The notes beneath the pieces are model-generated. The model ran no database searches. It was not told the DNA's origin and saw only the letters and a list, made by a program, of their open reading frames with translations. A stretch of DNA of 64,000 nt from Piromyces finnis finn (taxonomy: Eukaryota > Fungi > Neocallimastigomycota), in NCBI GenBank assembly GCA_002104945.1, contig MCFH01000026.1, positions 372,001 to 436,000 of the forward strand, in the 5' to 3' direction. The translations under genes were made by a program, and so were the position numbers. Positions 2,613 through 64,000 of the stretch are shown here, in pieces. How positions within the stretch are numbered: position 1 is the first letter of the stretch; the number at the start of each line of letters is the position of its first letter.

Positions 2613-3275
2613 TCAAGAGTCTAATTTTTTAGCACATATACTAATATCTTTACAATCGAGAATTTGTTTATCATATCCATTAAGTACTAAAGATATCATA
2701 CATTTTCCAACTTCTTGAATTGTATTACTCATATTGAAAGGTTTAGTAAAAGTAGTCATGATAGAATAAAATTTTTGTGTTCTATTTATATTTTTCATTT
2801 CAGGATTAATTTTCATCATACAAAGTCGAGGACAAAAAGTGTTTCTAAATGGATTACCCTTCATATTAATAAAATGTTCTTCTGCTTCACCTTTAGCCTT
2901 AGCCCACATAAGTTTTCCATTTTTATCTGAACCATAAGCACTAACATAGATGAATGTCATATCTTTATTTTGACCAAGAGCTTTAGCAAAATGAAGTGGT
3001 GTATCAATAGTGATATCACGATATTCTGATTCTTCAACACCTACAGAAGTTTTACCAGCACAATAGAAACAAGCATCATAACCTTGAAGTCTTTCATCAT
3101 CTTCAGATAAATCTTTAAAACTTGGAATAATTAATTCTTTTAATTTTTCATGCGTTTTTCCTGTGGCTCTTCTTGAAACACTTAAAACCTTATCAACCTT
3201 GTCATTATCTAAACATTCCAAGAGAACACCTTCCCCAACAAAACCTGTTGTACCAGTAATAATAACTTTAACCAT
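2613..3275 (-). CDS. Intronless NAD(P)-binding epimerase/dehydratase-like protein (atypical SDR, CC3/TIP30-like), copy 1
   Basis: 220-aa ORF; N-terminal Rossmann motif TGTTGFVG; GYDACFYCAG, MTFIYVS and MWAKAKG (WxxxK in place of YxxxK) resemble the bacterial family. Confidence 0.85.
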   Translation of the reverse strand: MVKVIITGTTGFVGEGVLLECLDNDKVDKVLSVSRRATGKTHEKLKELIIPSFKDLSEDDERLQGYDACFYCAGKTSVGVEESEYRDITIDTPLHFAKALGQNKDMTFIYVSAYGSDKNGKLMWAKAKGEAEEHFINMKGNPFRNTFCPRLCMMKINPEMKNINRTQKFYSIMTTFTKPFNMSNTIQEVGKCMISLVLNGYDKQILDCKDISICAKKLDS

Positions 3276-4125: not shown

Positions 4126-4788
4126 TCAAGAGTCTAATTTTTTAGCACATATACTAATATCTTTACAATCGAGAATTTGTTTATCATATCCATTAAGTAC
4201 TAAAGATATCATACATTTTCCAACTTCTTGAATTGTATTACTAATATTAAAAGGTTTAGTAAAAGTAGTCATGATAGAATAAAATTTTTGAGCTGTAGTT
4301 ACATTTTTCATTTCAGGATTAATTTTCATCATACAAAGTCGAGGACAAAAAGTGTTTTTAAATGGATTACCCTTCATATTAATAAAATGTTCTTCTGCTT
4401 CACCTTTAATTCTAGCCCACATATATTTTCCGTTTTTATCTGAGCCGTGACCACTGACAAATATAAATGTCATATCTTTATTTTGACCAAGAGCTTTAGC
4501 AAAATGAAGTGGTGTATCAATAGTAGTATCACGATATTCTTGTTCTTCTATTCCTACACCAGTTCTGCCAGCACAATAGAAACAAGCATCATAACCTTGA
4601 AGTCTTTCATCATCTTCAGATAAATCTTTAAAACTTGGAATAATTAATTCTTTTAATTTTTCATGCGTTTTTCCTGTGGCTCTTCTTGAAACACTTAAAA
4701 CCTTATCAACTTTGTCATTATCTAAACATTCCAAGAGAATACCTTCCCCAACAAAACCTGTTGTACCAGTAATAATAACTTTAACCAT
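4126..4788 (-). CDS. Intronless NAD(P)-binding epimerase/dehydratase-like protein, copy 2
   Basis: 220-aa ORF differing from copy 1 at 18 residues by manual alignment. Confidence 0.85.
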   Translation of the reverse strand: MVKVIITGTTGFVGEGILLECLDNDKVDKVLSVSRRATGKTHEKLKELIIPSFKDLSEDDERLQGYDACFYCAGRTGVGIEEQEYRDTTIDTPLHFAKALGQNKDMTFIFVSGHGSDKNGKYMWARIKGEAEEHFINMKGNPFKNTFCPRLCMMKINPEMKNVTTAQKFYSIMTTFTKPFNISNTIQEVGKCMISLVLNGYDKQILDCKDISICAKKLDS

Positions 4789-5460
4789 TTTTATTTTTAT
4801 TTTTATTTTTTTTTGTCGTTAAAATAATATATATATATATTTTATAAAAGTCGATATTTATTATTATTAAATATAATGCTTTTTTTTTTTTTTGTTATTG
4901 TTGTGTCCACTCTGCAGTTTTTTTTTTTTTTTTTTTTTTTTATTAATAATTCAAAGAAAATTCTTTTTGAATGATTAATTATATATAAAAATTTGGATTA
5001 TTAAAAAATATATTAAATATTAAATAACAATACTAACTTTGAATGAATACAGTTTAAAAGACTATTTTAATAATAAAATAAAAGGTTACCTTTTTACGTA
5101 CAAATTAATAAAAAGAAAATAAAGCATTGATTATTATTGATTTGAGATTAATGCATTGAAAAACAGTAAAATAAAATCGTTAACTTTGCATTTGTTTTTA
5201 AAAATAATAGTAAAAAAAAAAAAACCCTTCTTCCCTTCCTACTCTATTTTTGTTTAAATACATCAATAATTTAAACAAAAATAATAGTAAAAAAAAACAT
5301 TTTATAACAATTTTGATAAAATTATTATAAAATGTTTTTATTTAGTATACTTTTTATTTTTAAATAGCTTTATATTTTTATTTTTTATTTTTTATTATAA
5401 TAAATAAATGAATGAATGAATAAATAAATAAATAAATTAATAGGTAAATAGGTAAATAGA

Positions 5461-5507
<47 letters not shown>
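5461..5507. repeat. (AAT)n microsatellite
   Basis: Read directly. Confidence 0.9.
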
Positions 5508-5516
<9 letters not shown>

Positions 5517-5824
5517 TAGTATATATATATATAAAAGTGAATTGAAATAATAAAGATATAAAATAACTGTATAAAATTTCTTTATCTATATAAAATACAC
5601 GAGTAAAAAGTTTATATATAAATAAAATAAATAGTAAAATAGTATATTATTTGAAATTTTTTTTTAAAAAAAAAAAAAGAAATAAAAAAATAAAAAAACT
5701 AATTTGCTTAAATATCATTTTAATAAAAGATTTAATTTTCTATTAAATGAAAATATATCTTTTTTTTTTTTTTTTTTTTGTTAATGTTATCAACAATCTT
5801 GAGATAAAAAATGTTTCAAAAATT

Positions 5825-20756: not shown

Positions 20757-21995
20757 ATGAAGTCATCCTTATTAATTAAATTATTTAGTTTTATTGCTGT
20801 TGCTGTAAGCATTTATGCTAGCCCAATTTCAAAAAAGTATAACAAAGAAGAAAAAGTTACATTAACTGTTGAGTAAATATTTATTTTAAATTCTCTAAAT
20901 TAAAATAATATATAAATTTCAGTATAAAAAGTATTCTACAAAAGAAAAAAAAAATATAAAAATATAAATATAAAAAATATACTTATTTAATACTTTATTG
21001 TATAATGTTATTAATTTTATATTTAATACTTTATTTATTGTATAATATTATTAATTTTTTAATTGTTTATATTTAATATAAATAAATAGTAAAAATGTTA
21101 ATTATTACCATGACTTAGATCTTGATGTCTATTATCAAAAGAGTAGTTTAAAAAAAGTAGAAAAGAAACCAGTTGTTATCTACATTTATGGTGGTGCTTG
21201 GTGTTCAGGTATGTAATAAAATAAATAAAATAAAAAAAAAAAGAATTTCAGTAAGTATTAAAATTTATATAAATAAAAATGAATATAATAATAGGTAATA
21301 AGGAAAAGAACGCAAAGACTGGTGAATTCCTTAATGAAAATGGCTACATATCAGTTTTACCAAATTACCATGTTTTCCCAAATGCTACTAATGTTGAAAC
21401 TATGGTTGATGAAATTCATCATGCTATTCAATGGACTAACAAAAATATTCACAAGTATGGTGGTGATAAGAAAAGAATGACTATTGTTGGTCACTCTGCT
21501 GGTTCTCATTTAACTGCTTTAACTTTAGTTAAATCTACTCTTGGTATGAAGAATCTTGGAAAACCATTAAAGAAATTACCAACCTTTAAGGATGTTTTAT
21601 TATTAAATGGTCCATACGTTGTCGGAGATATTGAAGAATCTATTGAAATTTTCTCAAAAATTGGTATGATTGAATATGCTGAAGCTTTCAAGGGTTTATT
21701 CCTTAATAAGACAGGCTACAATCCACAAGATATTCTTGCTGAAAGAAAGAAGAAGTCCATTAAATCTCTTGGTACCGAACACATTACTTTCTTAGAATGT
21801 ACCGAAGACATGACTGTTCCACTTGGTTCAGCTGATCCAATGATTGAACAAGTTAAACGTACTGTTAAAAACATTTCCATAAAACATGTTGTCATTGAAG
21901 GTGAACACAATACCATTAATCATGGTATTAGAGATGGTGATGAAGAAGCAAAAAAGACTTTTATTAATTTAGTTAAAAAATACAATAAACTTTAA
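20757..21995 (+). CDS. Secreted alpha/beta-hydrolase carboxylesterase (HSL/BD-FAE-like), copy 1 (type A)
   Basis: Exons 20757-20872, 21090-21208, 21295-21995 splice in frame. Signal peptide MKSSLLIKLFSFIAVAVSIYA; oxyanion motif YGGAW; nucleophile GHSAG; candidate Asp (ECTED) and His (GEHN). The ORF-track Met at 21279 lies in intron 2. Confidence 0.88.
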
Positions 21996-24312: not shown

Positions 24313-25557
24313 ATGAAGTCATCTATATTAATAAAATTATTTAGCTTTATTGCTGTTGCTGCTAGCATTTATGCTAGTCCAATTTCAAAAAAACATCATC
24401 ATAAAGAAAAGATTACTTTAGCTGTTGAGTAAATATTTATTTAAACTAAAACAAAAATATATATAATGTTATTTATTTTATTATAAAAAATAAATTTATA
24501 AAAAAGTTATTAAAATGTAAATTTATAAAAGAATATTTATATAGTTAATACTTTATTATATAATATCACTAATTATTCACATTATATTTAATATAAATAG
24601 TTCTGTTAACTTTTACCATGACTTAGATCTTGATGTCTATTATCAAAAGAGTAGTTTAAAGAAATTAAAAAAGAAACCAGTTGTTATCTACATTTATGGT
24701 GGTGGTTGGTGTTCAGGTAAATAACAAAATAAAAATTAAAAATATAAAGTATTATTATATTATTAAATTATTAAAAATAAAATAAAGTAAAAAAAAAAAA
24801 ATATTTAGAGATTATTAACAATTTATAAATAAAAATAAAAATGAATATGATTATAGGTAAAAAGGAAAATAACTATGAAATAGGTGAATTCCTTAGTGAA
24901 AGTGGATACATATCTGTTATACCAAATTACCATGTTCATCCAAATGCTACTAGTATTGATACTATGGTTGATGATATCCATCATGCTATTCATTGGACTT
25001 ACAAAAATATTCATAAATATGGTGGCGATAAAAAAAGAATGACTCTTTCTAGTCACTCTGCTGGTTCCCACTTATCTATTTTAACTTTAATCAAATCTTC
25101 TCTTGGTATGAAGAATCTTGGAAAACCATTAAAGAAATTACCAAACTTTAAGGATGTTTTATTATTAAATGGTTTATACGTTGTTGGTGATATCGAAAAA
25201 AGTATCGAACTTTTCAGTCAATATGGTATGATGAATTATGTTGAAACTTTCAAAGATTTATTCCTTAATAAAACTGATTATAATCCACAAGATATTCTTG
25301 CTGAAAGAAAAACCAAGTCTATTAAATCTCTTGGTACCGAACATATTACTTTCTTAGAATGTACCGAAGATACAAATGTTAAACCTGGTTCAGCTGATCC
25401 AATGATTAAACAAGTTAAACGTACTGTTAAGAAAATTTCTACAGGTTATTATCTTGCTGAAGGTGATCACGATACTATTAATCATGGTATTAGAGATGGC
25501 AAGGAAGAAGCCAAAAAGATCTTTATTAATTTAATTAAAAAGTACAATAAACTTTAA
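24313..25557 (+). CDS. Secreted alpha/beta-hydrolase carboxylesterase, copy 2 (type B)
   Basis: Same 3-exon structure; YGGGW, SHSAG, ECTED, GDHD motifs. Confidence 0.88.
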
Positions 25558-27731: not shown

Positions 27732-28857
27732 ATGAAGTCATCTTTATTAATTAAATTATTTAGCTTTATTGCTGTTGTTGCCAGCATTTATGCTAGCCCA
27801 ATTTCAAAAAAACATCATAAAGAAAACAAGATTACTTTAGCTGTTGAGTAAATATTAAATATACATGCAAAAAAAAAAATATATATAAATTTAATACTTC
27901 ATCATTGAATAATATTGCTTATTGTTCATATTATATATTTAATTTAAATAGTTCTAATGTAAATTACTACAAGGATGTAGATCTTGATGTTTATTATCAA
28001 AAGAGTAGTTTAAAAAAATTAGAAAAGAAACCAGTTGTTATCTACATTTACGGTGGTGCTTGGTGTTCAGGTATGTAATAAAATAAATAAAATAAAAAAA
28101 AAAGAATTCAAGTAGGTATTAAGAATTTATATAAATAAAAATGAATATAATAATAGGTAATAAGGAAAAGAACGCTTACATGGGTGAATTCCTTAATGAA
28201 AATGGATATGTTTCTGTTGTACCAAATTACCATGTTTTCCCAAATGCTACTAATATTGAAACTATGGTTGATGAAGTTTATCATGCTATTCAATGGACTA
28301 ACAAAAATATTCACAAGTATGGTGGTGATAAAAAAAGAATGACTATTGTTGGTCACTCTGCTGGTTCTCATTTAATTGCTTTAACTTTAGTCAAATCTTC
28401 TCTTGGTATGAAGAATCTTGGAAAACCATTAAAGAAATTACCAACCTTTAAGGATGTTTTATTATTAAATGGTCCATATGTCGTTGGAAATATTGAAGAA
28501 TCTATCGAAATCTACTCTAAATATGGTATGATTGAATATGCTGAAGCTTTCAAGGGTTTATTCCTTAATAAAACCGGCTACAATCCACAAGATATTCTTG
28601 CTGAAAGAAAGAAGAAGTCCATTAAATCTCTTGGTACCGAACACATTACTTTCTTAGAATGTACCGAAGACATGACTGTTCCACTTGGTTCAGCTGATCC
28701 AATGATTGAACAAGTTAAACGTACTGTTAAAAACATTTCCATAAAACATGTTGTTACTGAAGGTGAACATAGTGCTGTTAATCATGGTATTAGAGATGGT
28801 GATGAAGAAGCTAAAAAGATTTTCATTAATTTAGTTAAAAAATACAATAAACTTTAA
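27732..28857 (+). CDS. Secreted alpha/beta-hydrolase carboxylesterase, copy 3 (type A)
   Basis: Same 3-exon structure; exon 3 and intron 2 nearly identical to copy 1; YGGAW, GHSAG, GEHS. Confidence 0.88.
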
Positions 28858-34292: not shown

Positions 34293-35539
34293 ATGAAGTC
34301 ATCTATATTAATAAAATTATTTAGCTTTATTGCAGTTGCTGCTAGCATTTATGCTAGTCCAATTTCAAAAAAACATCATCATAAAGAAAAGATTACTTTA
34401 GCTGTTGAGTAAATATTTATTTAAACTTATTAAACTAAAATAAAAAATAGATATAATATATCATTTACATAAAAAAAATAATTAATATTAAAATATACAC
34501 GCAAAATACATATATATTTAATATTTTATCGTTGTATTAAATTACTAATTATTCACATTATATTTAATATAAATAGTTCTAATGTTAACTTTTATCATGA
34601 CTTAGATCTTGATGTCTATTATCAAAAGAGTAATTTAAAAAAATTAGAAAAGAAACCAGTTGTTATCTACATTTATGGTGGTGGTTGGTGTACAGGTAAA
34701 TAATAAAATGAAAATTAAAAATATTATCAATTTATTATTGTATAATTAAATTGTTATAAATAAATATAAAATAAAATAAAAAAAAATATTCATAAATTAT
34801 TTATATAAATAAAAATGAAATATAATTATATAATTATAGGTAGTAAGGAAGGTAGCACCTATATGGGCGATTCCTTAGTGAAAATGGATATATTACTGTT
34901 ATACCAAATTACCATATTCATCCAAATGCTACTAATATTGATACTATGGTTGATGATGTTCACCATGCTATTCAATGGACTTACAAAAATATTCACAAGT
35001 ATGGTGGTGATAAAAAAAAAATGACTCTCTCTGGACACTCTGCTGGTTCTCACTTAGCTGCTTTAACTTTAGTTAAATCTTCTATTGGTATGAAGAATCT
35101 TGGAAAACCATTAAAGAAATTACCAACCTTTAAGGATGTTTTATTATTAAATGGTTTATACGTTGTTGGTGATATCGAAAAAGGTATCGAACTTTTCAGT
35201 TCAATTGGTATGATGAATTATGTTGAAGCTTTCAAAGATTTATTCCTTAATAAAACTAATTATAATCCACAAGATATTCTTGCTGAAAGAAAAAATAAGT
35301 CTATTAAGTCTTTCGGTACTATACACATTACTTTATTAGAATGTACTAAAGATACAGATGCTAAACCTGGTTCAGCTAAATTAATGATTGATCAAATTGA
35401 ACGTACTGTAAAGAAAATATCCACTAGTACTTATCTTTTTGACGGTAACCACAATGCTGTTAATCATGGTATTAGAGATGGTGATGAAGAAGCTAGAAAG
35501 GTTTATATGGAATTACTTACAAAGTATAATAAACCTTAA
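34293..35539 (+). pseudogene. Esterase copy 4 (type B) with a 1-nt deletion frameshift in exon 3 (pseudogene or sequencing error)
   Basis: Paralogs read ggt gaa ttc ctt (GEFL); this copy reads ggc ga ttc ctt at 34866-34876. The rest of the gene (signal peptide, GGGW, GHSAG, splice sites) is intact. Confidence 0.7.
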
Positions 35540-36063: not shown

Positions 36064-39000
36064 TTATTCTTTTATAATTCCACCATGTTTTTTTATAAAC
36101 TGTATAATATCATCATTTTTAGATAATAAAGCAAAATAAAGTGGTGTTCCTGAATTAAACGGAGGTATTTTATTAATATCAGCACTATGATGAACTAAAT
36201 ATTTTATAATATAAACTTTTCTTAATAAAATAGCAAACTTTAATGGGGTGTAAAGAATTCTATTTTCTTCTCTACCAGGAAAGTTAATATCTGCACCAGA
36301 TTCAATTAGATAATTTATTATGGTAATTGACCCATTTTCAATAGAATTTAGCAAAAATGTATCATTCCTCTCTAAATGATGATTAACATCAATGCCTTGG
36401 TCTATAAAATATTTTACCATGTCAACATGTCCTTCTCTTATAGCATCTAAAAGCAATAAAGAATAATCCGTTGTTTGTTTATACTTTAATAGATCCTTAA
36501 TAATACTCAAATTTCCAACTTTCATGGCTACGTGAATAGGATCAACTTTATAAGGATATTTATAATAATTATTATTAGGATTTTGAAATTTTTTATTCAT
36601 CAAATCCTTTATCCTATCCATACGTTGATTTATAATATCAAAACTTAACTCAGTAATCGTAGGCTTTTTTTCATTATATTTATATTTTGCTTTATTCTCA
36701 ATTAGATAGGAAATGATATCACGATTCCCAAGTTGAATGGCTATCTTTAATGCTGTATCTCCATTCTTATTTTCACTATGAATATTAATGCCTGTTTCTT
36801 CAACCAGGTAACGAATAACATCCATTCGATTATGAATAACAGCAGTCATTAAATAAGTATAATATTTTTTATTTTTATAATTTATATCGGTGGCACCGTT
36901 TTCAACTATATATTTGATCATCACTAAATCATAACCATTTTCAATCATACGACCAATAAAGGTTTCTTCCCCATCAGAAATATCTACATTAGCCCCATGA
37001 TCAATAAAATATTTAATTAAATAATAATGACGATAACTATTCTTTTTAAATAATTTAAATAATAATGAAAATAGTAGAGGTTTGTCATTATAATGAACAT
37101 TAATATCAACTCCATTCTCCACTAAAAATTGTAAACATCCAATTTCATTATTCTTAAATAGTTGAAATGCATTATTCATAGCAATATATAAAAACATTCC
37201 ACTCTTGGAAGAATCTATATCAATGATATTTTTTGAGTAAAAATATTTTAACAAATCATAATGATTTCCAAATATGATATAGCGAATAATTTTTTCATCA
37301 TTTATCTTTTTTGTATCAATATGGCAATCAATTAAATATTGAATAATGGAAAGATTTGCATTTCTAATGGCATACACTAAAATGTCACCTTCCATTTGAT
37401 TTTCTAATTGTTCATTATACCGAATTTGTATTAAGAGTTTTAATACCTCAAGACGATTTTCATCAATAACTTTTTTAATAACATTTTCGTCTATTTCTTC
37501 TGTACTCACCCCATTATGAAATAAGTATTGTATAATTTTTAAATTTTCTTTTTCGATAGCGCACCTTAAAAGAATTCGTATATCTTTTTTATTTATATTT
37601 ACAACTTTATTGATATATATAGGCCATAGAATTTGAAAAACTTCAAAACTAGTCTCTTGTATCAATTCTTTAAATAAATAATTATCTATCCTTAGATTGA
37701 AATCATTGTTTATCAAATATTCAATAATTTTCGCACTATTAAACTTTATTGCATCAAAAAAAAGAAGATTGGCATCATGATAAAATGGAATGATATAACT
37801 TGGTAGTAGTAACTTTAATAGATCTATTCGATCACACTTTATAATTTCCCTAATGATATCTACAGAAAAAATATCTATATTGTCTTTGATAAATATCTTC
37901 ATAAAGGATGATTCACTTTTATTTTTGATAATATAGAATAAGGCTTCCTTCATATCTTGTAGAGCTTTATTCCTTTTGGGACAAGATAAAACTTGCTCAA
38001 TCATTGACTTGATCCATTGTTTTTTTTCTTCCATACTAAAATCTTTTCTTTCCATGATACTTCCATATATAGTCGTTGTGGGGTAGCCCTCACTTAAATC
38101 ATCATTATTCATTTGCTGAAATATCATTAAATATATTTCTTTATTTTTAAGGATCAAGGATATTTCCATTGGAGATTTAATATTTCTAATTCTACTTTTC
38201 CTTCCATAAATATCGGCACCATATTGTATTAAGGTTTTAATCATTCTCAGATCTTCTTTTAAAATTGCATAATGTAAAATGGAATAGCCATATTCATCCA
38301 ATTCATTAATATCGCAGTAAGGAATCAAATAAGTGGTGAGATTAGGGTAATTTAATAGATAAGATAGTATGATTAGGGTAAATCCATGGAAAGGATCATT
38401 ATGAATCAAATGTTGTGAAGTATTACTCATAAAACTTTTATCTTTAACTTCTTTAATTCTTAATTCTAATTTGTTAATATCGTTCGTACATACTGCATGA
38501 ACAAAGGATGAAATGGTAGAAAGATCATTTTGCTCAAATCCAAATTTCAGTGAAATGTTATTATTTTTCATTAACCTATTTAAAATTTGATAATTTTTAT
38601 ATTTTATTGGTAATTCCAATAGGAAATTATTATTTGGATGAGATAAACGGTAATTGTTTTTATCAATAGATAGGAAAAAATCTAATAATTCTAAATTTCT
38701 TTCCTCTCTAATATGCTTTTTACCGTCATCATTCGAAAAGGAAGTGGATAAAATTGTTTTTATGGGAAGATCCCCATTTCTATCCTTGGTATTAATCTTT
38801 ACCATTGATTTTAACTTTTTAGTCACCACAATGTATTTAACATATTCTAATTGATTAAGTTTAATAAGAACGTTAATAATCAAAGAAAGATATGAACTAT
38901 CCATATTATCTTTAATATAGCCTATTCCTAATTTAGTTCTTTGTCTTTTTTTATCCATTCCTTCCTTTCCTGTAATATTTATTAATGTAACATTTAATAC

Positions 39001-42000
39001 CTTTTCAACTATGTAGGCCATTAATTTCATATTATTCACTTTACTGGCGCACATTAATATTTTTTCATAATTTATTTTTTTAAGTTGATTCCTTTTCTTC
39101 GAATGATGATCCATAATAATTGATAAAATTTTCTGATGAATTTCTTTCACAATATAGGTATTATTATGCTTATTCGCATAAAGTAGGATATTTTCATAAT
39201 CGATAGATTTTAAATAAACTAACTTTGAATTTATATTTTGGGGATTCATGATATGATAGAATAGTGTATTAATTTGGGCAGTTTGATGAATTGAACAGGC
39301 CACAAATAAAATCGACTCTATATTTGTCGAGTTGTAAATAAATGATTTATGCTTAAACAGGCATTCTATATAAAATTGAAAATAATGCAAACATTGAATT
39401 TTTCTGGAATCTTCGATACACACCTTCAAAGAGATAAACCTATCGAAAATAAATGATTTAGAATTTATTAAATCTTTAATGATACCTTTTACAAATCCAA
39501 TATCTTCTAGATAACTTAATCCATTTATCACATCAGACATTCTAATATGTTGTACATTAAATTGAGGATGACCCAGTAGTTTATTAAATAAATAACGGAT
39601 GATATCGATTGAATCCCATTCATCTAATTGAGTTAGGATTTGTAAAACTTTTTTAATATTGATATGATTTACTTCAAATGTGTTATGGTTAAAAGATTGA
39701 TCTATTACTAACTTTACCAAATCATGACTTTCTTTATACAAATCATGGATTTCAACGTCAAATTGGCTGTAATAAAAGTCTAATTCATTATACCGAGTAC
39801 TATTCACGTGATCGGAAACAATAAATTGACATGCATAGGATAACAATTTTTCAAATTTTATAAATCTTAAATCCAATATTTCCAGGGAAAAAATGTGTTG
39901 TAGAACGAATGTCATTAAACTCGGGTTATTATAGTGGTATTGAACCATAGTACATAGTATACCATCCAAATGAACAGGATCAATGTTAAAATGAGGCGAA
40001 GAAAAGATCTTTTCAATAAAACATCGTGATATACGAAATCTGAATTTACCAGAAAATTCGTCAGATTGATGAAGATTATTTAAAATGGATGGAATATCTA
40101 TTTTTTGAAGATTAATGTTGGGAAGGGTAAACCAATGATGAATAAATAGTTCTATTAATCGATAATTTCCAGTAGCATTGAATTGTTTCAAAATAGTATT
40201 AAAATCAATTTTATCATATTCAAAGTATTTATTGGATAATACCTTTTTAAGAAGGTAGTGTATTCTCTCTAAATTCTTATCCAAAACATGATATTCATCG
40301 GATAAATACATTGGTGAAAAAAACTTTTCCAAAAAAAGGGTTAAATCAAAAGAAAAGGTATTATTGGGATGAAATAATTTTTCAATAAAACTATAATTAT
40401 TACTATCCAATGCTACACCGACCAATTCACAAAATTGGTTGAAAGTTAAAGATGAAACGAACGAATTTCCATCAAATCTTAATAACAAATCTAGAATTTC
40501 TTTATTATTAAAACCGACCGCTTTTACAAATAGTTCATGATCGATCGGTATTTCCTTTTTTACTTTATTTACAAGAAAACTTTTTAATTGTGAATGTGTT
40601 AAAGGTTGTTTATTTTTATAATGATGCGTGATCATGTTAATACAGAAATCTTCATTATAAACATAATAATTTAAAAAATTTTTCAAAAAAGAATTTTGAT
40701 GATGAATAATTAATTCCCCGATAAATTCCAAAGTTATTTGATAACCTCGTTCATATAAAAATAAAAAAACATTATCATTATTTTCTTGGATATTACCCTC
40801 CCTATCCCTATACAATTTATATAGTTTAGTGGCGATGTCTATTCCTTTGATTTTATAATTAATATCGGCTCCCACCTTTAAGAGTAATCTTGCTATATTA
40901 TATTTTTTATTCGCAATTGCGTTAAAAAGAGGAGATTGATAATTAGTATTTGTTGAATGAGGTTTCTTTATTCTCATCCAATCAACACTACAAGTATAGT
41001 TTAGAGAAGAATAATTTGAGATAATAAACTCCAATATTTTAATAATGGTATCCTTTTCAATGGCATAAATTAAAAAATCAAAGGAATTTTCATCATTAAA
41101 ATAAGATAAATTAATTTTATTTTCTTTTACATATTTAGAAAATCGTTCAATATCATTTTCATTTATATACTGCATCATTATTTGTTTCCTTTCTTTATTT
41201 TTTTCAAGATTTTTTAAATAAAAGTCATCCATGTCAAGATTAATATTTCCATTCCTTACTTTTTCAATAAATAAATCTTTTTTCCTTACCATTGAAGATT
41301 GTTGTTGCTGTCGTTGTTGTTCCCCCTCTTCTTCTTCCTTCTTTAAATTTTCATTATTAAAAAAATGGAAAATATCCTCTAAAATAAGATCCTGTCGCCG
41401 CTTATCATATTGAACTATTATATTTAATGCTTCAAAATTCTCAACTTCTAAAGCAGTTTCATACATGGCCTTATGAATGAAAAATTTTTCATTTGTTTCT
41501 TTATTTATTAAAAGGAAGAGTTGATGATTGGATAAGGTATTTTTTCTACGATAAAAATTTGTTAAAAGGTTCAGAATTACATGAGTATTAAAATAATAAT
41601 TATGAAATAGTAATTTTAATAACAAGTTCTTATGATCTCTTATTAAGGATATGATAAAATCAGATGGGATGGGGATATTCCTTTCCAATAAAAATAATAA
41701 TAATTTTTTGGAAAGATGATTATCAAGGTAAAGTCGAAGTAATAAATCATCACTTTTCATAACATGATCATAATTTTTAGAAATTAAATAATTCAAAAGA
41801 TTATAATTATTTTTATTACTTTCTACTACTAAAAGATTATAAAAAAAGGAGCTATCGTTGGATACTTCAGCCTGAAAATGTTGATCATCGATATGTTGAA
41901 ATAAAAAATGAATCAGGGTTTGAGAAACATTATTTTCTAACGCTCTACGATAGTAATTCCCAATATTTCCTTCAAGAATAAATTTTCTATTTATCTGATG

Positions 42001-42900
42001 ATCTTTGATATAACTTTTAAGTTCTAATACCTTATTATTTAAGACCATGCCAATTATATTCCCTTCTTCTTCCCTAGTAATAATTCTTTCATATCCAACT
42101 AAACATTGGGGAGGCATGGCAGGTAGAGTTAGTTTTTTATTTTTAATTGCATGTAATAACTCATTTTTTAGAGTGGGTGAAACTAATGTTTCAAAAATCT
42201 TATGGATTACTCCATTTTTATTCTCCGTTGTTCTCGGATCATAAAAATATAAATGATGAAAACCTTTATAATTTCTATGAATTAATGCAACCTTATACCA
42301 CTGATCATAAAAATACATTTTATTATTTCTATCAATAACGTTCTCCAATTGAAAGGTTAATAAAGGTGTTTTCTTTTTGTAATAGTTTTCAAGTATATTC
42401 AAAATAAATTCATTATTCAATACAAAACAGGTTAAACAATATTTTAATGCTACATTAATATGTCTTTTGATTATATCCTCAATAAAATGACTAGAAAGTT
42501 TATACCCATGATTTAATAAAAATAAATAATTTTTATCATCTACATTAATGTTGTAATAAACACTTGCACCATATTTAATTAATAAATTAGCAATTTTATA
42601 ATTTTCATGATATAATGCGTATAAAAGTGGGGAATATTGATGGGTCGTTGTTGTTAAACGTGTTATATAATCTAGAGTGGTATATTTCCCTTGTCGAATA
42701 ATATATTCAATAATTTCTACAGAACTATTAATTCCAATACATTCTAACAAAATATCAATTGTTTTACTGTAGTGATAGGTTAATTTCTTTAGTTCAAAAT
42801 TATTTTCATAAATAAATATTTTAAATTCAATTAAAGAACATGACTTTTTATTTTTTAATTTATCTATTAACTTTTGTAGAATAATCTCGTTTTTTATCAT
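36064..42900 (-). CDS. Single-exon 2278-aa ankyrin-repeat/helical-repeat protein
   Basis: Uninterrupted ORF; ankyrin motifs such as SPLLYALYHENYKIANLLIKYGA, YGYSILHYAILKEDLRMIKTLIQYGADI, GDTALKIAIQLGNRDIISYLIENKA, TPLKFAILLRKVYIIKYLVHHSADIN. Confidence 0.9.
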   Translation of the reverse strand: MIKNEIILQKLIDKLKNKKSCSLIEFKIFIYENNFELKKLTYHYSKTIDILLECIGINSSVEIIEYIIRQGKYTTLDYITRLTTTTHQYSPLLYALYHENYKIANLLIKYGASVYYNINVDDKNYLFLLNHGYKLSSHFIEDIIKRHINVALKYCLTCFVLNNEFILNILENYYKKKTPLLTFQLENVIDRNNKMYFYDQWYKVALIHRNYKGFHHLYFYDPRTTENKNGVIHKIFETLVSPTLKNELLHAIKNKKLTLPAMPPQCLVGYERIITREEEGNIIGMVLNNKVLELKSYIKDHQINRKFILEGNIGNYYRRALENNVSQTLIHFLFQHIDDQHFQAEVSNDSSFFYNLLVVESNKNNYNLLNYLISKNYDHVMKSDDLLLRLYLDNHLSKKLLLFLLERNIPIPSDFIISLIRDHKNLLLKLLFHNYYFNTHVILNLLTNFYRRKNTLSNHQLFLLINKETNEKFFIHKAMYETALEVENFEALNIIVQYDKRRQDLILEDIFHFFNNENLKKEEEEGEQQRQQQQSSMVRKKDLFIEKVRNGNINLDMDDFYLKNLEKNKERKQIMMQYINENDIERFSKYVKENKINLSYFNDENSFDFLIYAIEKDTIIKILEFIISNYSSLNYTCSVDWMRIKKPHSTNTNYQSPLFNAIANKKYNIARLLLKVGADINYKIKGIDIATKLYKLYRDREGNIQENNDNVFLFLYERGYQITLEFIGELIIHHQNSFLKNFLNYYVYNEDFCINMITHHYKNKQPLTHSQLKSFLVNKVKKEIPIDHELFVKAVGFNNKEILDLLLRFDGNSFVSSLTFNQFCELVGVALDSNNYSFIEKLFHPNNTFSFDLTLFLEKFFSPMYLSDEYHVLDKNLERIHYLLKKVLSNKYFEYDKIDFNTILKQFNATGNYRLIELFIHHWFTLPNINLQKIDIPSILNNLHQSDEFSGKFRFRISRCFIEKIFSSPHFNIDPVHLDGILCTMVQYHYNNPSLMTFVLQHIFSLEILDLRFIKFEKLLSYACQFIVSDHVNSTRYNELDFYYSQFDVEIHDLYKESHDLVKLVIDQSFNHNTFEVNHINIKKVLQILTQLDEWDSIDIIRYLFNKLLGHPQFNVQHIRMSDVINGLSYLEDIGFVKGIIKDLINSKSFIFDRFISLKVCIEDSRKIQCLHYFQFYIECLFKHKSFIYNSTNIESILFVACSIHQTAQINTLFYHIMNPQNINSKLVYLKSIDYENILLYANKHNNTYIVKEIHQKILSIIMDHHSKKRNQLKKINYEKILMCASKVNNMKLMAYIVEKVLNVTLINITGKEGMDKKRQRTKLGIGYIKDNMDSSYLSLIINVLIKLNQLEYVKYIVVTKKLKSMVKINTKDRNGDLPIKTILSTSFSNDDGKKHIREERNLELLDFFLSIDKNNYRLSHPNNNFLLELPIKYKNYQILNRLMKNNNISLKFGFEQNDLSTISSFVHAVCTNDINKLELRIKEVKDKSFMSNTSQHLIHNDPFHGFTLIILSYLLNYPNLTTYLIPYCDINELDEYGYSILHYAILKEDLRMIKTLIQYGADIYGRKSRIRNIKSPMEISLILKNKEIYLMIFQQMNNDDLSEGYPTTTIYGSIMERKDFSMEEKKQWIKSMIEQVLSCPKRNKALQDMKEALFYIIKNKSESSFMKIFIKDNIDIFSVDIIREIIKCDRIDLLKLLLPSYIIPFYHDANLLFFDAIKFNSAKIIEYLINNDFNLRIDNYLFKELIQETSFEVFQILWPIYINKVVNINKKDIRILLRCAIEKENLKIIQYLFHNGVSTEEIDENVIKKVIDENRLEVLKLLIQIRYNEQLENQMEGDILVYAIRNANLSIIQYLIDCHIDTKKINDEKIIRYIIFGNHYDLLKYFYSKNIIDIDSSKSGMFLYIAMNNAFQLFKNNEIGCLQFLVENGVDINVHYNDKPLLFSLLFKLFKKNSYRHYYLIKYFIDHGANVDISDGEETFIGRMIENGYDLVMIKYIVENGATDINYKNKKYYTYLMTAVIHNRMDVIRYLVEETGINIHSENKNGDTALKIAIQLGNRDIISYLIENKAKYKYNEKKPTITELSFDIINQRMDRIKDLMNKKFQNPNNNYYKYPYKVDPIHVAMKVGNLSIIKDLLKYKQTTDYSLLLLDAIREGHVDMVKYFIDQGIDVNHHLERNDTFLLNSIENGSITIINYLIESGADINFPGREENRILYTPLKFAILLRKVYIIKYLVHHSADINKIPPFNSGTPLYFALLSKNDDIIQFIKKHGGIIKE

Positions 42901-47930: not shown

Positions 47931-49533
47931 GTTTAATGTTTATTAATAATTATAAAAAAATAATTTTTTTTACATATTTGATATCTAGATGGTATACCAG
48001 CTGTTTATGATTTTAAAACTTCAGATACCAATCAAATCATGGTAATGGAATTGTTAGGTCCATCTGTCGATTCTATGTTTAGATATTGTGGTAAATCTTT
48101 TTCTATGAAAACGATATGTATGTTAGCCAAACGTATGATTTCCTTATTAGAAAGTGTCCATAAAAAAGGAGTCGTCTACAGAGATATTAAGCCAGAAAAC
48201 TTTGTTGTAGGAAATGGTAATTAAAATTATAAAAAAAAAAGAATTAGATAAAATAGATAGAATTGATAGAACAAATAAGAATAGATAGGATTTTTATATT
48301 ATTATAATTTTAAAAAAAAAAGGATAATCATAATTAATAATTAATAATCAATATTAAATAACTAATGTCAAATAATCAATAATATCGTATTTTTATAATA
48401 ACACTCATCTTTTTTTTTATTTAATATAAATTTATCTATAATCGTTTTTAATTCTATTGACAAAAAAAAAAGTGATCACATTAAAAGATGAAGATTTAGA
48501 AAATTCAAGTGATGATTCTATTTCAACAGAAACCAACTCTATACCAATAAAAAATCATATTGCCTATCAACGTGATATTAAAAAAAGAAAAGGAAAAATA
48601 TATAATAGTCTTTCACCCAATTTTATAGATTCCTATTTAGATTTTGATGACATGAGCCCACAAGAACATCCTCTTAATCAAATCTATCTTTTAGATTTTG
48701 GTTTATCTGAATTTTATATTGATAGAAATACATGTGTTCATGTTCAAAATCGTCTAAGACCTCCATGTGGTACACCAAGATATATGAGTATAAGAACTCA
48801 TCAATTTAGACGTAATATTTTAATATATAAATAAATTATAATATTATAATAAAAATATTAGTATAACAATAAAAACAATAATAATAATAATAATAATACA
48901 TTATATAATATATATTTGTTTATATATCATATTATCATTAATAAATATTTAGAACAAAGCAGAAGAGATGATTTGGAATCTTTAGGATATCTCTTGTTAT
49001 ACTTTTTAAAGAAAGGAAATTTACCATGGCAAGGAATTACAGCAACAGATGTTAAATCCATGATCTATCGTATATGGGATAAAAAAGAAACCATTCCTTT
49101 AGAAAAATTATTTAAAGATTGTCCCGAACAATTTGTAACCTATATGAGTTATACAAGAAATTTAAATTTCACTGAAAAACCTGATTATAACTATTTGAGA
49201 AGTCTTTTTGATGAAATATTGAAATCTATAAATGAAGAAGATGATGGTATATTTGATTGGTATATTCAAATACAAAAAGAACAAGAAAAAAAAGACAACT
49301 TTTGTCGTCGTCTTATATATCGTATATTCCATTCCTCATCTTCATCTACAAAATGTACCTCACCAAGTCTTCTACTTGACATTCAAGTCAATAAAAATTC
49401 AATTGAGAAAGTTACAAAAAGTAATAGGGATCAATTTACTATTATTGGTTTTTTCAAAAGAAAATTCAAAAAAGTAATAAAAAGTTATTGGAAATGGCTT
49501 AAAAGATATATTGTTTTCATTAGAACGATGTAA
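46875..49533 (+). CDS. Casein kinase 1 family Ser/Thr kinase, multi-exon, atypical
   Basis: IGKGTTG, VAIKVE, HLYEEYKMLKYL, GIPAVY, MVMELLGPSV, FSMKTICMLAKRMI, YRDIKPENF, LLDFGLS, GTPRYMS, QSRRDDLESLGY, LPWQG, LNFTEKPDYNYLR. 5' exons (46875-46925 MDSAQLDKRLSTANIDD; 47207-47288) are tentative; core 47500-49533 is solid. Confidence 0.88.
47773..47935. repeat. Compound intronic microsatellite (AAT)n/(ATT)n/(TTATTATGT)n in the CK1 gene
   Basis: Read directly; source of the spurious poly-Leu/Cys ORF. Confidence 0.95.
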
Positions 49534-60350: not shown

Positions 60351-61790
60351 GAATTTTTTTTTATTTCTATTTTATTAATGTTTGTGGTTTTTTTTTTTTT
60401 TTTTTTTTTGGTTTTTTATTATTCTACATTACAATACATTATAATACGTTATTAATAACTATTTATTAGAAACGTAAGTAAACCATACATACAATTATAT
60501 TATTACAATACATTATTTCTTATTACATTATTTCAATACATTACTTTATTACATTATTTTCTATTATTAATAAAAGATGATCCCATATTGAAAATAAAAA
60601 ATAATTAACCCCTATAATATCTATAATAATATTTAATTAAATTAATTAATTAATTAATAAAAAACTATCCATTCATAGAATAAAATTAAATGTATGAAAA
60701 ATAATAATATAAATAAATCTAAAGAATTAAATAAATAACTAAATAAATTATTTCAAAAGAAATTGAAGATCACATCAACAGAAGATATATATAAATAAAA
60801 GTTACTTTTAATGACGTTGAAAATCCATAATTTAATTTATTTATTTGAATGTAAAAAGAGTATGTTGATAAAATAAAACAATAATAAACTATAGTCCTAT
60901 ATATTTATTTAATAAACTATTTAAAAAATAAACAAACAAATTTTAAAATCATGGTTGATCTAATGAAAGACGTCGTTTTAAGTGTAGTTTAGAATTTATA
61001 AAAAACAATTTAAATGGTATATATATATATATATATCATTATTATTATTGTTATATTGACACGTTTTTCTATTTTGAAAATAAAATATAAATATGTTGAT
61101 AAAGCAATAATAATAGTAATGATAAAATGAAAAATTATAATACAAATGTTTTTTTTTTTTCAACACTTTGTAAAATTAAATCATTGATAAAAACGTTTTG
61201 TTATAAATATATATTAAATAACCAAAAACAAAATGATAATTTATAAATAATAATGATATTAATAAACATAACAACAACAACAACAATAATAATAATAATA
61301 TTATTAATATTAATACTAATAATTTTACTTTTATCATTAACCCAATGCTTATTTTTAAAATTAAATATAATAATAAACTAATTTTTTTTTTTTTTTTTTT
61401 TTCTTTCTTTTCTATAAAATGAATACATTATCATAATTTTCTAGTTATAAAAAGAAAAGTATACCTATGAAAAAATAATCAATAAGGAAAAGAAAAAGAC
61501 TATCTTTATTAAAAAATATATACATAGTAATATCAAAAAAAAAAAAAAAAAAAAAAAAAGAGCATTTAGTAAATTGTGAAAAGAGAAACTACAAATTTTT
61601 CATTAAAATTTGAATATATATATTTTTTTTTTTTAAAAAAAAAAGAGAAAGACATTAGTAATAACGTAAACTACCAACACAAAATATTTTCAATTATCAT
61701 AATATTATAAAAATATAAACCATTGTTTTTTATTTTTTGATATTATCACTTTAAGACATATTTTAATAATTGGTCATTATAATTATAGAA

Positions 61791-64000
61791 ATGGATACCA
61801 ATACTTCTGAATTAAAAGAAATTTGGAAAAAATCAATACCTCAAGATCATTGGGCTTCTATACAGAGAGTTTCTCAACTCATTGATGGTAACTCATTAGA
61901 CTATTGTATAAAGCGTTGGGTAGACGAAGCAAACATTCTTTATGGAACAATAAACATTAATAGTCAAACCACTCTTGAAACCACTGTAATGTCAAATTCT
62001 GAAAATGGTTTAATTATAGATAATTCAACAGAAGAAAATTTATTAGATTATCTTATTGGTCCTTACCGAAAATGTGAATTAATGTTGGCTCTTTTATGTA
62101 TAAAAAAAAGGAACTTGATAGAATTTAGAGAAAAAATAGAAAAAGTAAGTTGTTAATGATAAGGATACTTTTGCATTAATTATATTTGAATAAATATTAA
62201 TTTGACTTTTTTTTTTTTCAAATAAATACTATACAATGTATATAAATATTATATATATTATGTTTTTTTTTTATAATATTATTACCTTATTTGTTCAATT
62301 CTATAAATTATTATGATTATTATTATGATATATATATTCCTATTCATGTATATTAACTATTGTTATTTTATATCTAATCTTACCATCATATAATTATAAT
62401 AATACCTTTGATATTTTTTTCCCAATATGATATTATTTAAATATTCAAACTTTTCAAAATAAAAAAAAATTCCACCTTTTTTAATTTTCCTTATTCGGTA
62501 AAAATTAAACTTATAATGTCATTAAAAAAAAATAGATACTACAATTAGCAAGACAAGATGCTGAAAATGATAAATTAAATAAGAATTTTATTGGTAGTGT
62601 TGCCAGTGCAATTAGAAATTATATTACCACTCCAGGAGGACAATATAATTGTGAAATAGAAAAAGATGATAAATGTTTTGAAAGAGGGGTCAAAAATGTG
62701 ATAGCATCATGTAAGAATAAGCTTTTTTTTTATTCATTTATTAAATAATAAAAATTTTATATAGTTTACCCTTTTTTTTTTTCTAATGATGAATAATATT
62801 AGAAAGAATTTTACTAATTAATTTAAAAAAAAAAAATTGAATGAGAGATATTATTTAAATTGGTTAATTTTATTATTATTATTATTTATTTATTTAATAA
62901 GATTGTTCTTTCAATGAACTAATTTTTTTTTTAATATTTTAATACATACTCTTTTTTTTTTTTTTTATTTTATGATTCCCCTTCTCTATTCCCTCATTTT
63001 ATCATTTAGTATCAGAATACCCAAAATGTCATCCTCCAACCCTCATGTATATAAGACATCAACCAAAAGAAGAATACTTACAAAAAAGTGGAATACAATG
63101 GAAACCTAATTGTGCAATAATATCAGATGATAAAAAAAGAATTGAACTATTAGAAAAAAAAATACCAGGAATAACTGGTATATATATATATTTATTTATT
63201 TATTTATTTATTTATTAAAAAAATATAAATATATATATTTACATAGATAGAAAGATAGATAGATTATTAAAATTTACATGTAATCTAATTATATAATTTA
63301 TATATAAATATGTTTAATTCATATAATCTATTTTATTTTCGGGTTTGCTTCAATTGGTAATTATATAGTCACCTCACCAACATCAATTAAACCACCAGTG
63401 AAAAAAGATGAAAAACCCTCCTTCCTCAGAAGAAAACAACCATCCTACTCATTCTTAAGAAATTCATCCAATAGACCAACCATGAGACAAAGTAAATAAA
63501 GAATTAAGCGAATTGTTTGAAGAATAAGAAAAAAAAAGAAACCTTTTTTTTTTAAAAAAATTTCACAAAAATTAATTTTTATTTTTATTATTGAAATAAA
63601 TTAATATAAAATAGATGATATAAATATATCCTCTGGAGGTGTATCTCTGTTAGCAAGAAAGAATAATGGACCAAGAAGAAATATGTTATTAGATTTAGAA
63701 GAAGTTAATCGTTTGAATCAAATACAAGAAGAAGAGAAACGGTTAGCACAAAAAAGAGAAGAAGAAGAAAAAGCAGCAGCTGAAAGAGAAAAAGAGAGAA
63801 AGAAAAAAGAAGAATTAGCCAGAAAGCAAAAAGAAAAAGAAGAAAGAGAAAGGGAACGTATGGAAAAACGTAAAAAGAAACAAAAAGAAGCAGAAGAAGA
63901 AAAGAAAAGAAAAGAAGCCCTTAAAGAAGCCAAAGAAAAGGAAGCACGAGAAAAAGAAAAAAAGAAACAGGAAGCCTTAGCTGCAGCACGTGAAGCTAAA
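61791..64000 (+). CDS. NELFA: NELF-A (negative elongation factor A/WHSC2)-like protein; runs off right edge
   Basis: Exons 61791-62144, 62536-62710, 63010-63177, 63369-63491, 63615->64000 splice in frame (phases 0,1,1,1). The product aligns by eye with human NELF-A as I recall it: DHWASIQRVSQLID~ELWAPPSIASLLT; RKCELMLALLCIKKRNLIEFREKIEKILQLARQD~VKLKLLLGTLHLPRRTVDEMKGALMEIIQLASLD; PPTLMYI~PLECQYL; RIELLEK~RAELLQK; MLLDLEEV~KLLDISEL. A possible extra 5' exon lies at 60951-60981. Confidence 0.68.

Follow-up and report, generated by a model that had tools for sequence, protein, structure and literature searches.

Negative elongation factor (NELF) is usually taught as an animal invention without a fungal counterpart, a view that derives from yeasts. 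Homologs of NELF were described in Dictyostelium and were found in neither of two yeasts (Chang et al. 2012, PMC3371697). Homologs of NELF-A and NELF-C were also reported from Loa loa, Chlorella and Dictyostelium, with the proposal that they originated early in eukaryotes and were subsequently lost in places (Vos et al. 2016, PMC4940160). Here, we describe a gene at positions 61791-64000 (+ strand) of a 64,000-nucleotide stretch of Piromyces finnis DNA (contig MCFH01000026.1, positions 372,001 to 436,000; hereafter the window). This gene is very probably the ortholog of the negative elongation factor subunit NELF-A in Neocallimastigomycota, the gut fungi.

The distribution of the subunits has been surveyed by Chivu et al. 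(bioRxiv 10.1101/2023.02.19.529146), who found NELF-B and NELF-C/D to be widespread and wrote of 'apparent homologs in some unicellular eukaryotes' for NELF-A. In that survey an HDAg-like domain was assigned to animals and Capsaspora only, the final NELF-A candidates were holozoan, and the gut-fungal protein lies outside the candidate set; the NELF-A files contain no gut fungus, though Anaeromyces was in the database. Three fungi do appear in the tree of NELF-A-like proteins, namely Rhizophagus irregularis (XP_025172955.1), Lobosporangium transversale (XP_021882417.1) and Basidiobolus meristosporus (ORY06555.1). In the supplementary alignments, Anaeromyces and Neocallimastix are further represented by candidates for both NELF-B and NELF-C/D, and Piromyces is represented for NELF-B. 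An earlier note on this DNA had pointed out that NELF is classically described as absent from budding yeast, fission yeast, C. elegans and Arabidopsis. With NELF-B, NELF-C/D and NELF-A-like candidates published, such an absence holds for the yeasts and does not extend to fungi at large. A search of a library of papers returned none that names NELF together with Neocallimastigomycota.

Terminal domains and their resemblance to NELF-A

The ortholog from Anaeromyces robustus (P0005; ORX84701.1, identical to UniRef100_A0A1Y1XG22 and EukProt EP00839 P009968) is a protein of 653 amino acids (aa). Its C-terminal domain corresponds to DNA past the end of the window; the domain was seen in orthologs, and for the window gene we infer it from orthologs that are 76-87% identical. 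When the Anaeromyces protein was compared with all PDB chain sequences using phmmer, the top match was 'Negative elongation factor A'. Residues 560-653 alone matched NELF-A with an expectation value (E) of 0.03, and a profile built from five gut-fungal C-termini placed human NELF-A at the top (E 0.0046), covering human residues 438-522 of 528. The alignment reaches the ends of both proteins, with FEMNF..GTWRKLKK facing FEMNY..GQWTRFKK (FEMNF.SGTWRKLKK and FEMNYATGQWTRFKK, respectively). Thus, the orthologs carry the conserved C-terminal region of NELF-A at their very end.

An AlphaFold2 (AF2) model of the 93-residue C-terminal domain was obtained with a predicted local distance difference test (pLDDT) score of 81.5 and a predicted template modelling (pTM) score of 0.66. 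In the modelled fold, two helices precede an antiparallel sheet of three strands. When the ESM Atlas was searched by shape, the best row for this model was an arthropod cluster, with a template modelling (TM) score of 0.70 over 81 of the 93 residues at 2.9 Å, the other rows reaching TM scores of 0.43-0.53. The proteins of the arthropod cluster are 576 aa long, all of them (100%) carry Pfam NELF-A_N, and they are named 'HDAg domain-containing protein'. Comparison of the C-terminal model with solved structures using Foldseek and VIA-align (48,161 chains in VIA-align) did not reveal a convincing fold (best E 0.045, Z 3.5); the best PDB fold matches were partial NTF2/SnoaL-like sheets only. On the metagenome contig L001, which carries a further gut-fungal copy of the gene, the 93 C-terminal residues (alignment A4) are encoded in two pieces, at about 5150-5276 and 5411-5580. 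A PDB search with just the last L001 exon gave weak MlaC-type matches only, and the wider 94-aa piece was needed to find NELF-A. Judged from the models, the C-terminal ~85 aa seem to form an ancient, foldable NELF-A domain that is common to fungi and animals and for which no solved structure was found. Since no solved structure matches, this domain of NELF-A seems never to have been resolved. We know of no function assigned to it.

At the other end of the protein, the evidence is weaker but points the same way. Pfam family PF23553 (NELF-A_N) was the top family for residues 84-170 of the Anaeromyces ortholog, which aligned to profile positions 46-120 of 146 (E 0.011). It was also the only family that matched all six of six orthologous N-termini (E 0.009-0.03, best 0.0093; 15-16 bits). 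In the window, the matched stretch is covered by the last part of exon 1 together with exon 2, the place at which the earlier note had put a helix pair 'KLKLLL...IIQLA..D'. In a feature search of the ESM Atlas with residues 1-235, three NELF-A_N clusters were on top among the named matches (0.90, 0.89 and 0.87). The Atlas's own model of these residues found its best structural row in an arthropod NELF-A cluster (TM 0.48, 144 residues aligned), and a search of the Atlas with the whole protein likewise pointed to NELF-A. UniRef lists the Anaeromyces ortholog (UniRef100_A0A1Y1XG22) under the name 'HDAg domain-containing protein', a sign that the NELF-A-type HDAg region (PROSITE PS51838) had already been matched by an automatic profile. 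A Pfam scan of the gut-fungal ortholog revealed no match to the hepatitis delta virus antigen family.

Several observations weigh against NELF-A as the identity of the gene. The domain that decides the assignment lies beyond the window, as described above. For the N-terminus, the Pfam score of 16 bits is under the gathering cutoff of 27, and the AF2 model (pLDDT 40) is unusable, which makes a Foldseek search with it meaningless. Even with a limit of E 10, human NELF-A was retrieved from the PDB neither by the N-terminal profiles nor by a profile of the linker and motif region. Taken one by one, the exon peptides of the window had no relevant match in Pfam or the PDB, and exon 1 had none in the ESM Atlas. 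The W-helix, PLECQYL, RAELLQK and LLDI.EL motifs, which the earlier note had matched to human NELF-A along with a supposed insertion of ~50 aa, lie in regions without a significant HMMER match to the human protein. An exon-1 profile run against 1.84 billion representative proteins returned gut fungi only, plus one spurious Cys-rich protein, and word-index searches with regions 1-240 and 561-653 of the Anaeromyces ortholog likewise stayed within gut fungi and found no bridging sequences. A metagenome scan with the C-terminal alignment added two gut-fungal contigs and no bridging lineage. The published survey did not list the protein as NELF-A-like with the Anaeromyces proteome in its database. 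Finally, the analysis, which covered this 64-kb window of the genome, offered no evidence for NELF-E, complex formation or pausing.

A rival explanation is a lineage-specific nuclear protein that came to resemble NELF-A by chance, or by convergence of short helical and low-complexity stretches. None of the individual sequence matches is strong (E 0.005-0.03, Pfam being under its cutoff), and neither the exon-1 search of 1.84 billion representatives nor the word searches produced a relative outside gut fungi. However, NELF-A is the best match of two domains independently of each other, and both the order of these domains and their positions at the protein ends are shared between proteins of similar size; for these reasons homology is favoured. 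Moreover, the confidently modelled C-terminal fold matches arthropod NELF-A models at TM 0.70, well ahead of the next rows, and has no solved counterpart (best Z 3.5), and the language-model search arrived at NELF-A_N clusters independently. A chance origin would require both terminal matches, the language-model matches and the UniRef profile call all to be coincidence, and we therefore consider it improbable. Homology to NELF-A is, in our judgement, highly likely. Thus, the proposal of the earlier note that an early-diverging fungus encodes a NELF-A homolog is supported by the C-terminal PDB match and fold, the sub-threshold Pfam match of the N-terminus, the Atlas searches and the UniRef HDAg name.

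Gene structure and conservation in gut fungi

In the window, the gene extends over 61791-64000 on the plus strand, the strand of all exons and introns given below. Five exons join in one frame into 1206 nucleotides (nt) that encode 402 residues. No stop codon interrupts the frame or closes it before the window ends, and the gene is accordingly incomplete there. The GC content of the coding sequence is 31%, compared with 19% for the window.

Exon 1 (61791..62144, aa 1-118) starts with the ATG at 61791, the same Met at which the orthologs begin, and encodes N-terminal helices. Residues ~52-83 are variable and rich in insertions and deletions across gut fungi, and the stretch matched by Pfam NELF-A_N in orthologs starts at about aa 90 (nt 62058). 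Intron 1 (62145..62535) is 391 nt long and has the form GTAAGT...AG. It is followed by exon 2 (62536..62710, aa 119-176), in which conservation of the N-terminal domain is highest (ILQLARQDAENDKLNKNFIGS...). Intron 2 (62711..63009, 299 nt) leads to exon 3 (63010..63177, aa 177-232), in which the N-terminal domain ends (YPKCHPPTLMYI ... RIELLEKKIPG). Intron 3 (63178..63368, 191 nt) precedes exon 4 (63369..63491, aa 233-273), which encodes a basic linker rich in Pro and Ser (EKPSFLRRK.PSYSFLRNSSNRPTMRQ), with strong conservation among gut fungi. Introns 2 and 3, as well as intron 4 (63492..63614, 123 nt), are bounded by GT and AG and lie in phase 1. Exon 5 (63615..64000, aa 274-402) is cut by the end of the window and contains the remainder of the linker, an LLDLEEV motif and a tract rich in E, K and R. 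According to the orthologs, two more exons follow past the window end, where low-complexity sequence rich in Q, N and P and the conserved C-terminal domain also lie.

The linker as a whole spans aa 226-297, 72 residues rich in P, S, K and R. LLDLEEV occupies aa 298-304 (nt 63686-63706) and belongs to a motif that is invariant in gut fungi, M.LD[LI]EEVNRL. From nt 63707 to the end of the window the E/K/R tract follows, 70% of which is E+K+R. The linker, the motif and the charged coil announced by the earlier note were thus all present in the translated product. A helical N-terminal domain had also been claimed; AF2 draws the N-terminal 232 residues as all-helical, at low confidence.

The spliced product aligns from aa 1 to 402 across four junctions with gene models or transcripts obtained independently from related gut fungi, P0007 (84.6% identity) and the Anaeromyces robustus protein P0005 (76%). 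Because both alignments run from end to end over all four junctions, the splice model can be regarded as validated. With four of four introns of the GT-AG type, the in-frame joining of five exons proposed in the earlier note is confirmed. Another ortholog was found in Neocallimastix lanati (KAG4107165.1). Full-length orthologs are 653-682 aa long and have seven exons (Anaeromyces, Neocallimastix), and at least five gut-fungal lineages possess one. Peptides 67-81% identical to that of exon 1 were found in other gut fungi; those from JGI/ENA metagenomes and from 'Orpsp1_1' (Orpinomyces/Pecoramyces) were 67-78% identical. Although the AT richness might suggest Dictyostelium as the source, this origin is rejected, since the matches lie in Orpinomyces, Anaeromyces and Neocallimastix and place the window in Neocallimastigomycota. 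For the metagenome contig L001 a complete gene model could be built, consisting of seven GT-AG exons and encoding 660 aa. A second contig, L007 (Ga0307465_103001), carries at 336-2363 an intron-free open reading frame (ORF) of 675 aa that represents a Neocallimastix-type ortholog with an AT-rich leader. Since this ORF lacks introns, the contig resembles complementary DNA (cDNA) and is evidently transcript-derived, although it belongs to a 'metagenome' collection.

Comparison of the window with L001 gave a ratio of nonsynonymous to synonymous substitution rates (dN/dS) of 0.12 overall; taken separately, the values were 0.18 (N-terminal domain), 0.09 (linker) and 0.04 (charged tract). Nucleotide identity between the two is 81-90% in exons (exon 2, 90%) and 41-58% in introns (intron 2, 49%). 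Among sampled words of 61700-64000, one DNA run holds a share of 0.88, and four runs guessed to be RNA hold 0.49-0.52. The latter share equals the exon share of 0.52 and hence gives indirect support for an expressed, spliced gene.

These data argue against a pseudogene or a mis-spliced artefact of AT-rich sequence. The frame is open over five exons with canonical splice sites, dN/dS is 0.12, full-length orthologs exist in at least five gut-fungal lineages, one of the contigs is intron-free and transcript-like, and the word share in the putative RNA runs equals the exon fraction. A non-functional locus is therefore extremely improbable. The gene is real, constrained by purifying selection, expressed-looking, and continues past the window.

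Middle part and possible function

The protein consists of an N-terminus of ~230 aa that is predicted to be all-helical, a long and mostly non-globular middle, and a compact alpha/beta C-terminus of ~85 aa. This overall architecture matches that of animal NELF-A. Within the middle part, the length of the E/K/R tract is nearly fixed, measuring 124, 124, 124, 120 and 124 aa in five gut-fungal proteins (P0005 and P0007-P0010; residues ~296-420), with 71-74% E+K+R. By its composition, the tract fits an ER/K single alpha-helix that would serve as a spacer of set length. Together with the variable Q/N/P-rich tract, the charged helix looks like a lineage-specific elaboration of the tentacle.

In the human complex, the N-terminal domain of NELF-A has been solved together with NELF-C (Vos et al. 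2016, eLife, PMC4940160). A mechanism can be proposed by analogy with this complex (Vos et al. 2016, PMC4940160; Chivu et al., bioRxiv 10.1101/2023.02.19.529146). The N-terminal domain of the gut-fungal protein would dock on fungal NELF-C/D, which with NELF-B would make up the core. The middle part, comprising the basic Ser/Pro linker, LD(L/I)EEVNRL and the charged helix, may then act as a flexible 'tentacle' that reaches over RNA polymerase II (Pol II) and DSIF, and the assembled complex would restrain early Pol II elongation.

How far the likeness to the animal complex extends is a separate matter from homology. The gene could encode a true NELF-A homolog without supporting focal pausing of the animal type. 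With NELF-B and NELF-C/D but no bona fide NELF-E, gut fungi would have at most a weak, dispersed 'proto-pause', or the protein would serve another nuclear role linked to NELF. The region that corresponds in place to the human Pol II-binding tentacle, a segment needed for pausing, has no detectable sequence similarity to human NELF-A, and the middle part contains lineage-specific tracts (the 124-aa ER/K helix and the Q/N/P-rich region), both of which agree with such a role. On the other hand, a conserved linker and motif stand where the tentacle would be expected, and together with the charged helix they are very strongly constrained (dN/dS 0.04-0.09), which argues that the tentacle-like part is functional, and the UniRef HDAg name implies a PROSITE profile match over a region resembling the Pol II-binding one. 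We regard NELF without focal pausing as quite possible in gut fungi, short of being the expected outcome.

A fuller interpretation is that gut fungi keep a working NELF of at least the subunits A, B and C/D, and that they use NELF-dependent promoter-proximal pausing. A two-domain NELF-A would then predate the split of fungi and animals rather than being a recent holozoan addition, and the C-terminal alpha/beta domain and the ER/K helix of fixed length would be functional parts of the tentacle. Taken as a whole, this interpretation is tentative, and we would not expect all of it to hold.

Neighbouring reading frames and comparison with known NELF proteins

Several other ORFs were found in the window. 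At 36064-42900 (- strand), 2278 aa are encoded without interruption in a single ORF, whose C-terminal third contains many ankyrin repeats (Pfam Ank_2, E 1.7e-56). Both its length and its lack of introns are unusual for this genome. On the plus strand, esterase-like ORFs are arranged in tandem at 21279-21995, 24841-25557, 28141-28857 and 34946-35539, three of them with an identical length of 238 aa and the fourth with 197 aa. The array matches Pfam BD-FAE, COesterase and Abhydrolase_3 (E 1e-11 to 1e-8), and its members are probably exon fragments of duplicated plant-cell-wall esterase genes. Two ORFs of 220 aa at 2613-3275 and 4126-4788 (- strand) look like a tandem pair, the first of which matches NAD-dependent epimerase/dehydratase (E 1.5e-5). 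At 48457-49533 (+ strand), adjacent ORFs were read by eye as the halves of a casein-kinase-I-type kinase (DFGLS, GTPRYMS) separated by a short intron; a Pfam scan of the second half gave only a weak, spurious CIS_TMP match under the cutoff.

With regard to NELF-A, the family itself, its presence outside animals and in some early-diverging fungi, the gut-fungal core subunits and the automatic HDAg label are already on record. New here are a very diverged lineage of NELF-A, overlooked by a dedicated survey, and an ancient shared C-terminal domain. Judging by this gene, NELF-A has very probably kept both of its conserved ends in an early-diverging phylum of fungi, and the gene complements the published NELF-B and NELF-C/D candidates of gut fungi as well as the NELF-A-like proteins of three non-Dikarya fungi. 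This argues that NELF-A is older than the 'recently derived' reading of the recent survey, and that diverged members can escape sequence searches. In practical terms the gain is modest, since the family and its wide distribution were known and the Anaeromyces ortholog already bore the HDAg label.

The closest known proteins are the orthologs of other genera, Anaeromyces robustus ORX84701.1 and Neocallimastix lanati KAG4107165.1, which are 73-76% identical over the 402 residues of the window and share the same exon junctions. In GenBank they are labelled 'hypothetical protein', the automatic HDAg name being present in UniRef only. Among fungi outside this group, the NELF-A-like proteins of Rhizophagus, Lobosporangium and Basidiobolus are likewise from non-Dikarya; they can be detected by BLAST or HMM from human NELF-A, whereas the gut-fungal protein was not listed with them. 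The NELF-A homologs of Dictyostelium discoideum and Chlorella provide precedents outside animals; they are not fungal, and conservation in them does not extend beyond the NELF-A/C core. In structure, both gut-fungal terminal domains come closest to arthropod NELF-A clusters of the ESM Atlas; the comparison sets one predicted model against another, and the N-terminal TM is below 0.5. Human NELF-A (WHSC2; chain U of PDB 6GML and 8UHA) shows no similarity to the gut-fungal N-terminal domain or tentacle that is detectable at the sensitivity of HMMER. To our knowledge, it also lacks the ER/K helix of 120-124 aa and the Q/N/P-rich tract. At 528 aa compared with ~660 aa in gut fungi, the human protein nevertheless has its parts in the same order.

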